Assembly: GCF_964204645.1 (NCBI RefSeq)
Contig: NC_134033.1
Location: forward strand, 11,540,655-11,604,654
Direction of reading: 5' to 3'
Origin: Tubulanus polymorphus
Lineage: Eukaryota > Animalia > Nemertea
DNA: 64,000 bases
In this document: positions 17,801-29,800 of the stretch, in pieces
How positions within the stretch are numbered: position 1 is the stretch's first letter
Layout: each line of letters begins with the position of its first letter
The notes under the pieces: generated by a model
Seen by the model: only the letters and a program-made list of their open reading frames with translations
What the model was told of the DNA's origin: nothing
The model's database searches: none
Made by a program: the position numbers and the translations under genes

Positions 17801-20800
17801 AAAAAATCAGGGACCGGATTCACAAAGTCATTCAAACAAACCCTTTATGTACGAAGATAATGTAAATATATACACCTCCTTGACTGGCAGCCATTTTGAT
17901 GAAACATCAATATGTTTTGTCCAACGATAAAATTCCCAATTCTTTCGATTTTATCTCATACGGAAATTGTCTTACATATGTTTCTTCACTGTTCGCTCTG
18001 TGCAGGTTTAAGCTCAAAATCAATAGTGGCATGACGTTTACGAAATGTCATACGCACAGCAGACTTTTTTTTCTTAAATATCATGGGCAGCAAAAGTGTT
18101 AAATGCGCAAAATTATCGATTTGAGTTCATGAAAAATCCACTATAAAATGGGATGGTTAGCAGCTCTGCGAAATTTGATTGGTTAGTGGAAAGGTCATAT
18201 TCAGTAAAATATCTGTAAATGGGATGTAATCATGCTCCATGAAACCAGGCCCTGAACGACAGGTACAAACATAGGCAAAATGTCATAATAAAAACTGTAA
18301 GCATCTCTTAAAGGATGTGCATATTTCACTGTATATGAATGCGTATTCACTATTCTACCAAATATCAGCCATCTTGCAATACCATTGCAGCATTATGGTT
18401 ACATAGTCCTACTCAACGGTACCCTAATTGTAATCCGGAAATACCATCTAATTTGCACAATGATGTAGGGTAGAATAGTGATACACATAGCTACGTATAC
18501 ACGCCCTTAAAAGCGATTTTCATCACCACGTTAACAAAGCGATCAACTTTCTCATCAAATCAACAATCTTCAGACAAAAAATAATAATAATAATAGAAAA
18601 AAATAATAATAGAAATAACATGAAATGTATATTCATCCAAAAAGTAAGATCGATAACCACCCGCAAGACTGATTCAATATCAATATATTAATGGCACACA
18701 TTCGCAGAGACAAGACTTAGTAGAGAACGTTACGACCTTTAATCCGAATGCAAGGGAAAAAAGGTTGAAGAAAAATATCGCATTCGGGAGGAGCTAATAT
18801 TACCTGCATCTGTGTAACGTACGCAACGACGTAGCAATGGGTAAAATGAAATATAGGAAAAATAGATGGCGCTAGAATATAAGGCGTTCGTGTATATATA
18901 TAAAGAGGAAGTGATTTTATTTTCTAAAAGCAGCAACTAGAGAGAGTCGACTCGCTTTGTCGGCGCTGTTGTTGTGTTGCTCGGTGAATGTGTAAGAGAA
19001 AGCCACGTTCGTTTGACCATGTACTCTATGATTTGCTGACTGAGTCATTAAGAGAAAGCCATGTACGTTTGACCATGGACTCTATGACTGACCGAGTCAT
19101 TAAGAGAAAGCCATGTTCGTTTGACCATGGACTCTATGACTGACCGAATCATTAGGAGAAAGCCATGTTCGTAGAGTCCATGGTTTGACTGACTGAGAGT
19201 CAACTGACGCTTCCATTCAGTTCGGTCAACTCAATCAAACAGATACACGATCGATTCACGGATTACTCAAATATTCACACAACACCGACCAGTGGATAAT
19301 TGACCTAGTGACAATTAAAAGTTCATTGTTACTATGGTATTTATCCGCCGGTTATTTTTAACAACTTTTAAGTCACTGACCCCAAGTCTGTAAAACTGGA
19401 CCTGGGATTAACTTTTTTCCCAGTCGATCAACGATGGACCAGCAGAGAATGGTCGAAGCAGTCCTTTCTTTATTATCGAAATAGGGAAAGGATCGTTGAA
19501 CAACGTTCCGAGAGATCGATTTCCAAAATTGCTAATGTCACGGGTTGAGGAGAAAGAAGCAAAAAATAACAATCCGTTGTTAATTTATGATACTTACGTA
19601 GCCTTCTGGGTGAAGTTTGATGAGAAATTTCTTACGCTTGAAACTCAACTTTCGTACTTTCGCCCACGAGAACGTGTTGATTTTCGTGTTGTTTTGGAAT
19701 ACTAAGACGCCCATGTGCGCGACGGCCAAATGCAACGGCACGCCTTCGTGGTCCTGAAAAATATTCCAACGAAATTCGAAACCGCATTAGAATTATAACA
19801 GGTTTTTTTCTAAAATTCGGATGCGATGAAAATGTGTCCCGATTTTCGAGCGCACTTAATCCAATTCGGATCTTTATCCAAGAAAATTACGATTAGAACC
19901 CAGTTCCACAGTTTGGAGTCAAAATATAAACTTTGAGTTCAACTAATTGAAAAACAACTAATTTTAACTCTAGAATCATATTACACTATTGAACTGGATC
20001 CAATTCTGTAATTCTGATTCAACCAGCGATAAAAATTTGAAATCGAACTAATTCGATTATCTCTTAGAGGCAAATTTTGACCAGGAACTATGGAAAGGGC
20101 TCCCAGATAAATTTCTCTGTTGATAATGATTCGATTAACTAAGCAGTCTGTACTGGAGAGTATTGCTAGTAGAGAACAATGGGCAGATTCTTCGGTTTAT
20201 CAAATGAACGAAAACAGTTTTGAAGAAGAAATCATGTATACGGAAAGAAATATATGAAACAAAAACACTTCACAAAAGAAAACATTCTGTTTTGACGAAT
20301 ACAAGATGTATGTATAAACTTTTAAATGAAAATTCGTGCAAATGCATATCGAGTATATTTGATATAATTGTTGATGACACGAAATTGAACGTTGAAATTA
20401 GCCAATTAAAATCAGCCAATAATGATAACGATAAACCATTAACCATACATAATACACATACATTCACATTTCTACAGTGTCAGTAAAACAATGAAAATTT
20501 ACTTACAAAACGCATTCGAAATAGCAAAATACTTGAAGTAAATTAAATTTCAAACCTAAATGCTGATGTACATAAATATAAACATATGGACGAGGTAACA
20601 GTAAGTACGTAGAGACAACTGAAATGACAACAAAAAACTGAAATGCACGCTTTAGCTCTTTGAGTACAATTGTCTGCACAGTATCTCATGACACGTCACT
20701 CCGACCTCAAAGTTTTAAAACTAGTTGTCATACTCGCCAGTTGTCATAAATGGGAATGGGGACGACAACAGCTATCTCACCGGATGGCGTGACAAGCACT

Positions 20801-26800: not shown

Positions 26801-29800
26801 TCGTGACTTCTATTCCTTCTACATTTCAATAGAATTGTTGAGGAGCTATGATACTTTGTAGGTTGACTAGTTTTTTATTAAAAGTACGAGTTTTCACTAC
26901 TAGTGAATAGTTTAGCTTCATCATGTAAATGACACTAGTAGCGAAAACTTACATAATAACGATTGGAATCAGAAGGCTAGAAATCCATGATGCAGGGGTT
27001 GATATAGTGGGACTTCTGAAACTTGTAGAAGTCCATCAAATTTTTGGATGCCCTTTTAAATTTTGTAAGACTGACTGTTCGTCACACCATCCGTGCAGTG
27101 GGATAGTTCGGCTTTGCGGTTCCCCATTGATGAGTCGAAACAAATCAACCGGTGTTCACGAGTACAGCTAGAAGTTCACAATAATGTCCTCGCAATCCGA
27201 GTCCGAAATAGATAAACGACTAAGAGAACAACATACGTTATGAATGGCCGTGACGTTAATAATACACCAAGAGTAAGTGTTGCGATGGGACCGAACGTAG
27301 TCGACTTTGACCCGACCCAACCCGACGCGGAGGTTAATCACCTTGTTATCACCGTCGTGACCCACCTTTGCAGGACACATCTTTACACCGTACAGCTCAA
27401 CTTTCCTCGCTGTATCCAGAAGATTGAAATCAGCTTCTGCCGGAGTTTCATTTCTGAAAATGATAAGCGTAATAATTAATGGATGATTACTCAGTTCCAA
27501 CATCTTCATTGCTACCGAAAATTTTAATTTAAAGTTTTCCTTTAAGTTAGGTATCAGCAGGGTTTATATCACAAGGGTTGTAGTGGTCCTGTAGCGAAGT
27601 CGTTAAGGAAGATATAAGCTAGGTTTGTATCAGAACAGTAACAGTGGTCTTGTAGGGAAAATGTTTAAGTAGGTATCAGCAGGGTTTATATCAGAACGGT
27701 CATAGTTGTCCGGTAGGGAAGACGTTTAGGATGACATCAGCAGTGTTTATATCGGAATGGTCACAATTGTCCGGTAGGGAAGACGTTTAGGATGACATCA
27801 GCAGTGTTTATATCGGAATGGTCACAATTGTCCGGTAGGGAAGACGTTTAGGATGACATCAGCAGTGTTTATATCGGAATGGTCATAGTTGTCCGGTAGG
27901 GAAGACGTTTAGGATGACATCAGCAGTGTTTATATCGGAATGGTCACAGTTGTCCGGTAGGGAAGACGTTTAGGATGACATCAGCAGTGTTTATATCGGA
28001 ATGGTCACAGTTGTCCGGTAGGGAAGACGTTTAGGATGACATCAGCAGTGTTTATATGGGAATGGTCACAGTTGTCCGGTAGGGAAGACGTTTAGGATGA
28101 CATCAGCAGTGTTTATATCGGAATGGTCACAGTTGTCCGGTAGGGAAGACGTTTAGGATGACATCAACAGTGTTTATATCGGAATGGTCACAGTTGTCCG
28201 GTAGGGAAGACGTTTAGGATGACATCAGCAGTGTTTATATCGGAATGGTCACAATTGTCCGGTAGGGAAGACGTTTAGGATGACATCAACAGTGTTTATA
28301 TCGGAATGGTCACAGTTGTCCGGTAGGGAAGACGTTTAGGATGACATCAACAGTGTTTATATCGGAATGGTCACAGTTGTCCGGTAGGGAAGACGTTTAG
28401 GATGACATCAGCAGTGTTTATATCGGAATGGTCACAGTTGTCGGGTAGGGAAGACGTTTAGGATGACATCAGCAGTGTTTATATCGGAATGGTCATAGTT
28501 GTCCGGTAGGGAAGACGTTTAGGATGACATCAGCAATGTTTATATCGGAATGGTCATAGTTGTCCGGTAGGGAAGACATTTAGGATGACATCAGCAGTGT
28601 TTATATCGGAATGGTCACAGTTGTCCGGTAGGGAAGACGTTTAGGATGACATCAGCAGTGTTTATATCGGAATGGTCACAGTTGTCCGGTAGGGAAGACA
28701 TTAAGGTTGACATCAGCTAGGTTTATATCAGGACGGTCGCAGTGCTAGATGGCATTAAGGAAGATATTAGCAGGGATATATTACAATGGTTACAGGTCAA
28801 GGTATCGAAGTAGGTGACAAGGTATAAACAGGGTTTATATCAGAAGGGTCGCAGCTCTTCCGTAGTGAAGGCATTGAGGATGATATCCGCTGGGTTTTAC
28901 GTACACATGTTCAGCGTGAAATTCGACGATTTTATCTTCTACACGTTCGTTCATCACGCTCGGAGGAAGGATTTTACACATTTGTATGTACTGCCTATCT
29001 GTATATTCATCTTGAAAATCACCGAGTTCAGCTGCAAGTATACATACATAAACACAATTAGACTAGAAACATGAAAGAACAAATATTCAATTGTAGTAGT
29101 GCAATAGATCTTGAAAAGATCACATTCTTATCCCCCAATGAAGCGAATATCAAAGGGTAACATCAATACAGATAACAATGAGTTTAAGGGGTATCTAAAT
29201 CAAATTTGTAAGTCAAATTTGTGTTTCATTCGACTACATACCTTGTGCGATATATGAGGCTAATAAAGCAGATGTATTTTCTGTACACGGCATAGCACCA
29301 GAAGCAAGGTCACGTTTGACTTGGAGGGCAAATAAATATCTGAAAACACAAGAAAAAGTATAAGATATAAGTTTCTATTACTAAAGTTTTTACGATCAGG
29401 ACCCGGTTCTGACAGTTCTCAAACATTAGATCAGTAGATCAGTGGAATGGCGTGATGCTGTTGTATTCACTATTATCATCTGACTGAATCGTCACTTACC
29501 ACGGTACATGATATATTCGAATGCTTACCTTGTATATTCCTCCTCTAATAGCCCCGGATCAGGAGTATAAAATTTAACACTAAATCGAAAATTCAGCTCA
29601 TTCGGCGAGCCAACCTGCTTTAGGATCGGTTTATCATGGTCCAGCCAACACTGCAAATATATGGACATAAATCAATGGATAACTCTAAATCTGAATACAC
29701 TTTCTTTTTTCAACTCTTAACCCGTGGAGCGCCATTCATTACGAGATGGTTTCAAGCTTTTTTTTTCCAGGAGAGGCCAGAGAAGAAGAAACCAAGCGAC

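Follow-up and report, generated by a model that had tools for sequence, protein, structure and literature searches.

One supported cassette exon and its exon-like neighbours in intron 6 of a FARP2-like gene of the nemertean Tubulanus polymorphus

Introduction

Does one intron of a nemertean FARP gene hold an array of interchangeable microexons, or one alternative exon among sequences that resemble exons? This question is raised by a 64,000-nucleotide (nt) stretch of the Tubulanus polymorphus genome (NC_134033.1, positions 11,540,655 to 11,604,654), hereafter the window, in whose coordinates all Tubulanus positions are given. The window contains a FARP2-like gene on its minus strand, to which the RefSeq isoforms X1-X3 map exon by exon with 100% identity. 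According to an earlier note made from the sequence, intron 6 of this gene harbors at least five short AG...GT units, which would bring a choice of unrelated peptides into one surface loop of the FERM domain, in combination or in mutually exclusive fashion.

Much of this description is borne out. The RefSeq mapping and the Pfam FERM_C match confirm the FARP identity, the intron number, its phase 0, and an insertion point at the start of FERM lobe F3, between KMCPAK and DHEG. The coordinates, peptides and donors of the five units and of a weaker sixth are also as the note gave them, and the five are in frame, free of stops and each a multiple of three in length. However, an array of swapped cassettes would be expected to show at least two units in transcripts, and a single unit occurs in the isoforms, in data that are shallow. 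We consider intron 6 to hold one supported cassette exon together with pseudo-exon lookalikes, and we assign this reading a probability of about 0.7.

Results

The open reading frame at 2792-5920, used as a query, retrieved one protein, which NCBI annotates as 'FERM, ARHGEF and pleckstrin domain-containing protein 2-like isoform X2 [Tubulanus polymorphus]'. Its protein cluster comprises three isoforms, X1 (P0003, 1241 amino acids), X2 (P0001, 1231 amino acids) and X3 (P0002, 1229 amino acids). Exons were searched individually by reference, and the full-length proteins are database entries, not hand-joined spliced models. Intron 6 (19754-27365, minus strand; 7612 nt; phase 0; GTGGGT...TTTCAG) separates two constitutive exons. 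Exon 6 (27366-27453, minus strand; 88 nt; NETPAEADF...YGVKMCPAK) matches residues 188-216 of P0003 exactly, closes lobe F2 and forms strand beta1 of F3. Exon 7 (19598-19753, minus strand), which starts with DHEG and runs to KLHPEGY, matches residues 229-280 of the same protein exactly. It encodes strands beta2-beta6 of F3, the KRKK patch included, and matches Pfam FERM_C (E = 1e-17) from the first position of the profile. The intron position is common to many animals: where genes of other species were called on unspliced DNA, the calls continue through the intron as AK-V...Q-DHEG.

The supported exon lies at 24292-24327 (minus strand), has a length of 36 nt and encodes 12 residues that are matched at 100% by tblastn with isoforms X1 and X2. 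Its borders, tatag/36 nt/gtacgt, its phase 0, its length in multiples of three and its lack of a stop give it the sequence characters of a cassette exon. Besides the TAG acceptor and the GTACGT donor, it has a T-rich tract of ~50 nt, the longest pyrimidine tract among the candidates. At the junction, X1 (P0003) and X2 (P0001) read a 22-residue segment where X3 (P0002) reads KMCPAK-DHEG, and in an alignment of the three isoforms the FERM region differs solely by the 12 residues at the K/D junction. Both the inclusion and the skipping form are found among the RefSeq models, so that transcripts with and without the exon are represented at the level of models. There is nothing unusual about the 36-nt unit as an alternative cassette exon, and the public annotation already lists it. 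The earlier note knew of no description of such inserts for FARP; this holds for the literature searched, where we found no paper linking FARP or nemerteans with microexons, and it does not hold for the annotation of this one exon. An internal CAG at 24319-24321 (minus strand), nine bases into the cassette, is a possible second acceptor, from which a 27-nt form (APFRPLYMP) would result; this form occurs in none of the isoforms.

Among ~118 other FARP sequences of protostomes (molluscs, annelids, arthropods and flatworms), none has an insert at the K/D junction, and the spacing at this junction is identical across them except in two evident model errors (P0018 and P0112). Because no homologue carries the 12-residue insert, protein homology cannot have been its source in the annotation, and transcript alignments presumably were. 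The cassette is probably specific to the Tubulanus lineage. A search of short database proteins with the FERM piece alone yielded no Tubulanus transcript fragments; the inserts seen at the junction in fragments of other species were rejected as read-through of short introns, of the AK-V...Q-DHEG kind.

None of the other candidate peptides is present in any of the three isoforms of the cluster. These candidates, all on the minus strand, are a 24-nt unit at 26953-26976 (PSDSNRYY; TAG acceptor, GTAAGT donor), a 45-nt unit at 25504-25548 (15 residues), a 15-nt unit at 24636-24650 (IHVCG), a 63-nt unit at 21800-21862 (21 residues; GTGAGT donor and a good pyrimidine tract) and a weak 21-nt unit at 23749-23769 (YNLITSK), whose GTAATC donor fails the splice-site filter described below. 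The 45-nt unit is stop-free nearly by composition, because it is a C/T-rich tract, and the five stop-free codons of the 15-nt unit carry little information. The 63-nt unit is the best of the four that pass the filter, yet it too is without support. It is surrounded by a CpG-rich stretch (21650-22450) that has a raised depth in sequencing run X2 (19-38, against 0-10 elsewhere in the intron) and that gave neither an Rfam nor a repeat match. An upstream UGC motif occurs only at 26953-26976; it is expected by chance at about one-third of sites and was not used as evidence.

Four public sequencing runs were found to contain this stretch. They belong to one study, none is labelled as RNA, no tissue-resolved RNA run was found, and the display consists of assembled contigs, not raw reads. 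Run X1 has an even coverage of ~30x and is therefore DNA, and runs X2 and X3 are patchy and without exon 6. In run X4, a 6506-nt contig with a depth of 79 falls exactly on exon 6 and nowhere else in 21500-27480, where the intron pieces have depths of 4-8. Run X4 alone of the four looks like RNA. One of its contigs (25367-25600, depth ~7, the intron level) is unbroken over both proposed splice sites of 25504-25548, and another (23723-23915) passes straight over 23749-23769. The acceptor of 21800-21862 is crossed unspliced by the X4 contig 21857-22210, and its donor by a contig of run X2 (21656-21851). In the contigs of the four runs, no joints or loose ends are listed at the boundaries of the unsupported candidates. 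Since contigs lose rare variants, these observations limit inclusion of the candidates to a low level in that sample, rather than to zero.

Could five in-frame units arise in such an intron by chance? We counted units of 9-99 nt with a filter that demands a YAG acceptor, a pyrimidine content of at least 60% at -20 to -4 and at least 3 of 4 matches to GTRAGT. On the sense strand of intron 6, 30 AG..GT pairs pass, and those that are in frame and stop-free are exactly the five proposed units; five further stop-free units belong to the wrong length class, as the earlier note had warned that lookalikes that do not preserve the frame also occur here. The note had proposed the antisense strand and shuffled sequence as controls. 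The antisense strand has eight pairs and no in-frame stop-free unit. In 300 dinucleotide-preserving shuffles of the intron, 2.7 +/- 1.7 units are found, and 14% of the shuffles reach five. A calibration comes from the orthologue of Lineus longissimus, where the filter passes 39 units over 69.4 kb. Six of these match annotated peptides and 33 are unannotated (a rate of 0.48 per kb, equal to 3.6 in 7.6 kb), so that about one-seventh of the passing units are real.

The repeat content of the intron was examined by searching it against the whole 268-Mb assembly, and every candidate was placed in unique sequence outside the repeats, a result that does not tell the readings apart. An interspersed repeat of ~225 bp at 22683-22911 has at least 25 copies with 71-86% identity on other contigs of the genome, and the stretch 26677-26740 is one unit of a repeat with dozens of matches, in tandem arrays of ~77-bp period on C8, C9, C10 and C3; neither overlaps a candidate. 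At 26677-26740 the summed contig depth exceeds 10,000 in all four runs, and 23943-24059 is likewise a short stretch with a summed depth of thousands in all four. The joints 23982-25615, 24055-26690 and 26719-27110 were considered as splices and rejected: they touch high-copy repeats, their ends are not CT..AC, and they correspond to no candidate. Intron 6 was also scanned for Rfam families and for tandem repeats, with no hits.

For the comparison with a second nemertean, the FARP2-like locus of L. longissimus (L001, 73 kb) was located via its isoform X2 (P0126). The homologous intron is 2.07 kb long and contains no in-frame units; when it was compared with Tubulanus intron 6 by blastn and tblastx, no match rose above noise (none below E = 0.1; best E = 0.16). 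The conservation in a related genome that an array might show was thus not found in this comparison, in which Lineus is a distant relative. Its K/D junction (L001:24553-24567) has a tandem donor, AAG/GTAAGG/GTAGGT, with the two sites six bases apart, and not a microexon; the tandem donor accounts for the additional VR in 13 of the 15 isoforms listed. However, inserts of the kind that the earlier note envisaged, used as a combinatorial array in a FERM surface loop, are annotated in the neighbouring Lineus intron (HPEGY/GYYKD, 6.8 kb), though not in Tubulanus intron 6. RefSeq isoforms X1-X17 of Lineus include four phase-0 cassettes on the plus strand: FHWPNLDVYE (L001:27334-27363, 30 nt), MDATL (L001:29180-29194, 15 nt), a 21-residue cassette (L001:29694-29756, 63 nt) and SDDSSELQ (L001:31630-31653, 24 nt). 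The isoforms combine them in at least five ways, and the inserts enter the next surface loop of F3. Two of the Lineus cassettes have a DVY motif in common (NLDVYE and QDVYMI), which hints at duplication. No counterpart of the Lineus array was found in Tubulanus intron 7, and weak matches of the Lineus peptides there were rejected, as none has splice sites.

What would the 12 residues do to the protein? We compared AlphaFold models based on an alignment of 39 FERM domains. In the model that lacks the cassette, strands beta1 (P0002 213-216) and beta2 (222-228) are predicted to be joined by a 5-residue turn, with a predicted local distance difference test (pLDDT) score of 93-95 for the block. With the cassette, beta1 (P0003 213-217) and beta2 (234-240) are predicted to be joined by a 16-residue loop, in which residues 219-230 fall below pLDDT 50, and the remaining strands and helices are the same in both models. 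In the AKDHEGV turn, K, D, E and V are invariant in the 39 aligned domains; the exon therefore interrupts a motif that is among the most constant in the lobe. Inclusion of 24292-24327 gives isoforms X1 and X2, and skipping gives X3. Inclusion adds the 12 residues between K216 and D229, in the beta1-beta2 hairpin of F3. The floppy loop may alter the contacts that this face makes, for example with lipid, with the tail of a partner or with a neighbouring lobe, while the domain stays folded.

The nearest solved structures are the FERM domains of zebrafish and mouse FARP2 and of zebrafish FARP1 (6D21, 6D2K and 6D2Q; E = 1e-105 to 6D21). The Tubulanus protein shares with these vertebrate FARP1 and FARP2 domains the three-lobed FERM with its FERM-adjacent (FA) region, and it retains the lipid-binding beta5-beta6 basic patch as KRKK. 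Unlike Tubulanus X1 and X2, the vertebrate structures have a short hairpin, and the 12 residues align to a gap. For the FARP FERM domain, the functional sites given are a groove between beta5 and the last helix, where partner tails bind, and the beta5-beta6 KRKR patch, where lipid binds; the beta1-beta2 hairpin is not among them (PMC6041286).

The remaining mapped exons, all on the minus strand, are exon 1 (56468-56575), exon 2 (30325-30429), exon 3 (~29528-29650), exon 4 (~29243-29341), exon 5 (~28904-29032), exon 8 (~16054-16215), exon 9 (~15464-15544) and exon 10 (~5519-5857). The mapping ends at residue 471, and the remainder of the gene lies outside the window. Precomputed domains of P0001 include FERM_N, FERM_M, FERM_C and FA, the N-terminal FERM and FERM-adjacent arrangement of FARP, and also PF00621 and PF00169, the DH (RhoGEF) domain followed by two PH domains that is typical of the family and is encoded by exons beyond the window.

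Three side observations concern the rest of the gene. The frame at 2792-5920 (minus strand) is open for 1043 codons, runs ~900 codons past the RefSeq donor at ~5519 and has no Pfam domain match. Long isoforms of 1360-1818 amino acids with FERM and FA domains only are annotated at several FARP/Cdep loci of molluscs and arthropods (P0014, P0025, P0040, P0050 and P0093), and the Tubulanus frame may be an unannotated alternative terminal exon. Beyond the window, residues 661-670 of P0003 form a second small alternative segment (GRRQSRHTAW, 30 nt), which is present in X1 and X3 but not in X2 and varies independently of the F3 cassette. Finally, a GT47 (exostosin-type) gene lies antisense inside FARP intron 1 at 32610-34157 (plus strand), as does one in Lineus at L001:16834-18102 (minus strand), with 35% identity over 461 amino acids (E = 9e-83). 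Because the gene is nested antisense in the same intron in both nemerteans, the nesting is older than the split of the two lineages.

Discussion

The earlier note had proposed five cassettes. One of them, at 24292-24327, is included in X1 and X2 and skipped in X3; the other four occur in no isoform and in no spliced contig. For the 24-, 45-, 15- and 63-nt units, and for the weak 21-nt unit, we consider it most likely that they are pseudo-exons, that is, chance AG...GT pairs that the spliceosome ignores. The four unsupported units resemble pseudo-exons in having good motifs, no transcript support and a density not clearly above the background.

Several observations weigh against this reading. 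The pseudo-exon status draws on absence of evidence in shallow data: the RNA-like data are the contigs of one run, which drop rare variants, and run X4 gives no coverage at 26953-26976 or 24636-24650. Exons shorter than ~25 nt are often missed by automated annotation, and T. polymorphus has three annotated isoforms against 18 in Lineus. Moreover, Lineus shows that arrays of small F3 cassettes occur in a nemertean FARP gene. The other introns of the Tubulanus gene (introns 1, 5, 7 and 9; 40.5 kb) contain six units that pass the filter, which corresponds to 1.1 expected per 7.6 kb and a probability of 0.006 for five or more, so some enrichment over this control within the genome is possible. Intron 9 (5858-15463, minus strand) is the only other intron with a raised density, with four in-frame stop-free units; as these are counted in the background, the background may be slightly too high.

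These points bear on the proposal that the 36-nt exon is not alone and that one or more of the other candidates are real microexons, rare or restricted to certain cells such as neurons, which would give at least two alternative inserts in the F3 hairpin. The likeliest such exons would be 21800-21862, with its long pyrimidine tract and GTGAGT donor, or 26953-26976. The excess of five units over the 1.1 expected, their position in unique sequence, the shallow annotation and the small cassettes of 15, 24, 30 and 63 nt in the next F3 intron of Lineus all favour it. However, no other candidate appears in any isoform, three candidate sites are crossed unspliced by X4 contigs, and there is no similarity to the homologous Lineus intron. 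The hydrophobic core LFIELLI of the 63-nt peptide would also fit poorly in a surface hairpin. As to number, removal of the real exon leaves four units against 1.1 to 3.6 expected, depending on which of three disagreeing controls is used, and both the shuffles and the Lineus calibration account for those four. Five units are no clear excess over the chance expectation. We therefore regard a further microexon as unlikely, and any single one of the remaining units as an improbable exon.

Conversely, it could be argued that no unit is real and that the 36-nt insert of X1 and X2 is an artefact of automated gene prediction. No junction read is seen for this exon, as its stretch (24242-24367) is masked as low-complexity or repeat in the read display; most constitutive splice sites of the gene are stronger than its GTACGT donor and its TAG acceptor; and no orthologue carries the insert. 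The last point cuts both ways, because a predictor with no homologue to copy from would have had transcript alignments as its only source. In addition, inclusion and skipping are both annotated, the exon has the strongest pyrimidine tract of the candidates, and run X4 has one joint dropped inside precisely the masked stretch that holds it. This joint fits a junction of exon 6 with the cassette without proving one. An artefact is, in our view, very improbable, and we retain the reading of a single supported cassette exon among pseudo-exons.

Two systems invite comparison. The Srrm/eMIC neural microexons of bilaterians (PMC8797185) are likewise small alternative exons that keep the reading frame and bring a few extra residues to the surface of a protein. 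Unlike them, the supported exon exceeds the usual limit of 27 nt, and no UGC motif stands directly upstream of its acceptor. The Lineus array is closer to the one proposed for Tubulanus, in that it consists of small, frame-preserving, phase-0 cassettes for an F3 loop, used combinatorially, in the FARP2-like gene of a nemertean. It differs in its position, HPEGY/GYYKD and not K/D, and its cassettes have no sequence similarity to any Tubulanus candidate. If Tubulanus intron 6 held further, rarely used microexons besides the annotated one, then Tubulanus, in the beta1-beta2 hairpin, and Lineus, in the next loop, would have built arrays of swappable peptides independently in FARP F3 surface loops. 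This is doubtful; if true, it would be a recurrent, nemertean-specific way to diversify one FERM surface.

Conclusions

The earlier note was accurate in its observation of the sequence and about one-fifth right in its interpretation. The main value of the case lies in calibration: a reader of the sequence alone located a real alternative exon, but the other four of the five calls do not rise clearly above the background. Biologically the result is modest: a 12-residue loop, probably lineage-specific, that breaks the AKDHEGV turn of FARP F3. Taken together, the Tubulanus 12-residue loop and the four-cassette array of Lineus suggest that inserts under the control of splicing are tolerated, and perhaps put to use, in the F3 loops of nemertean FARP proteins.

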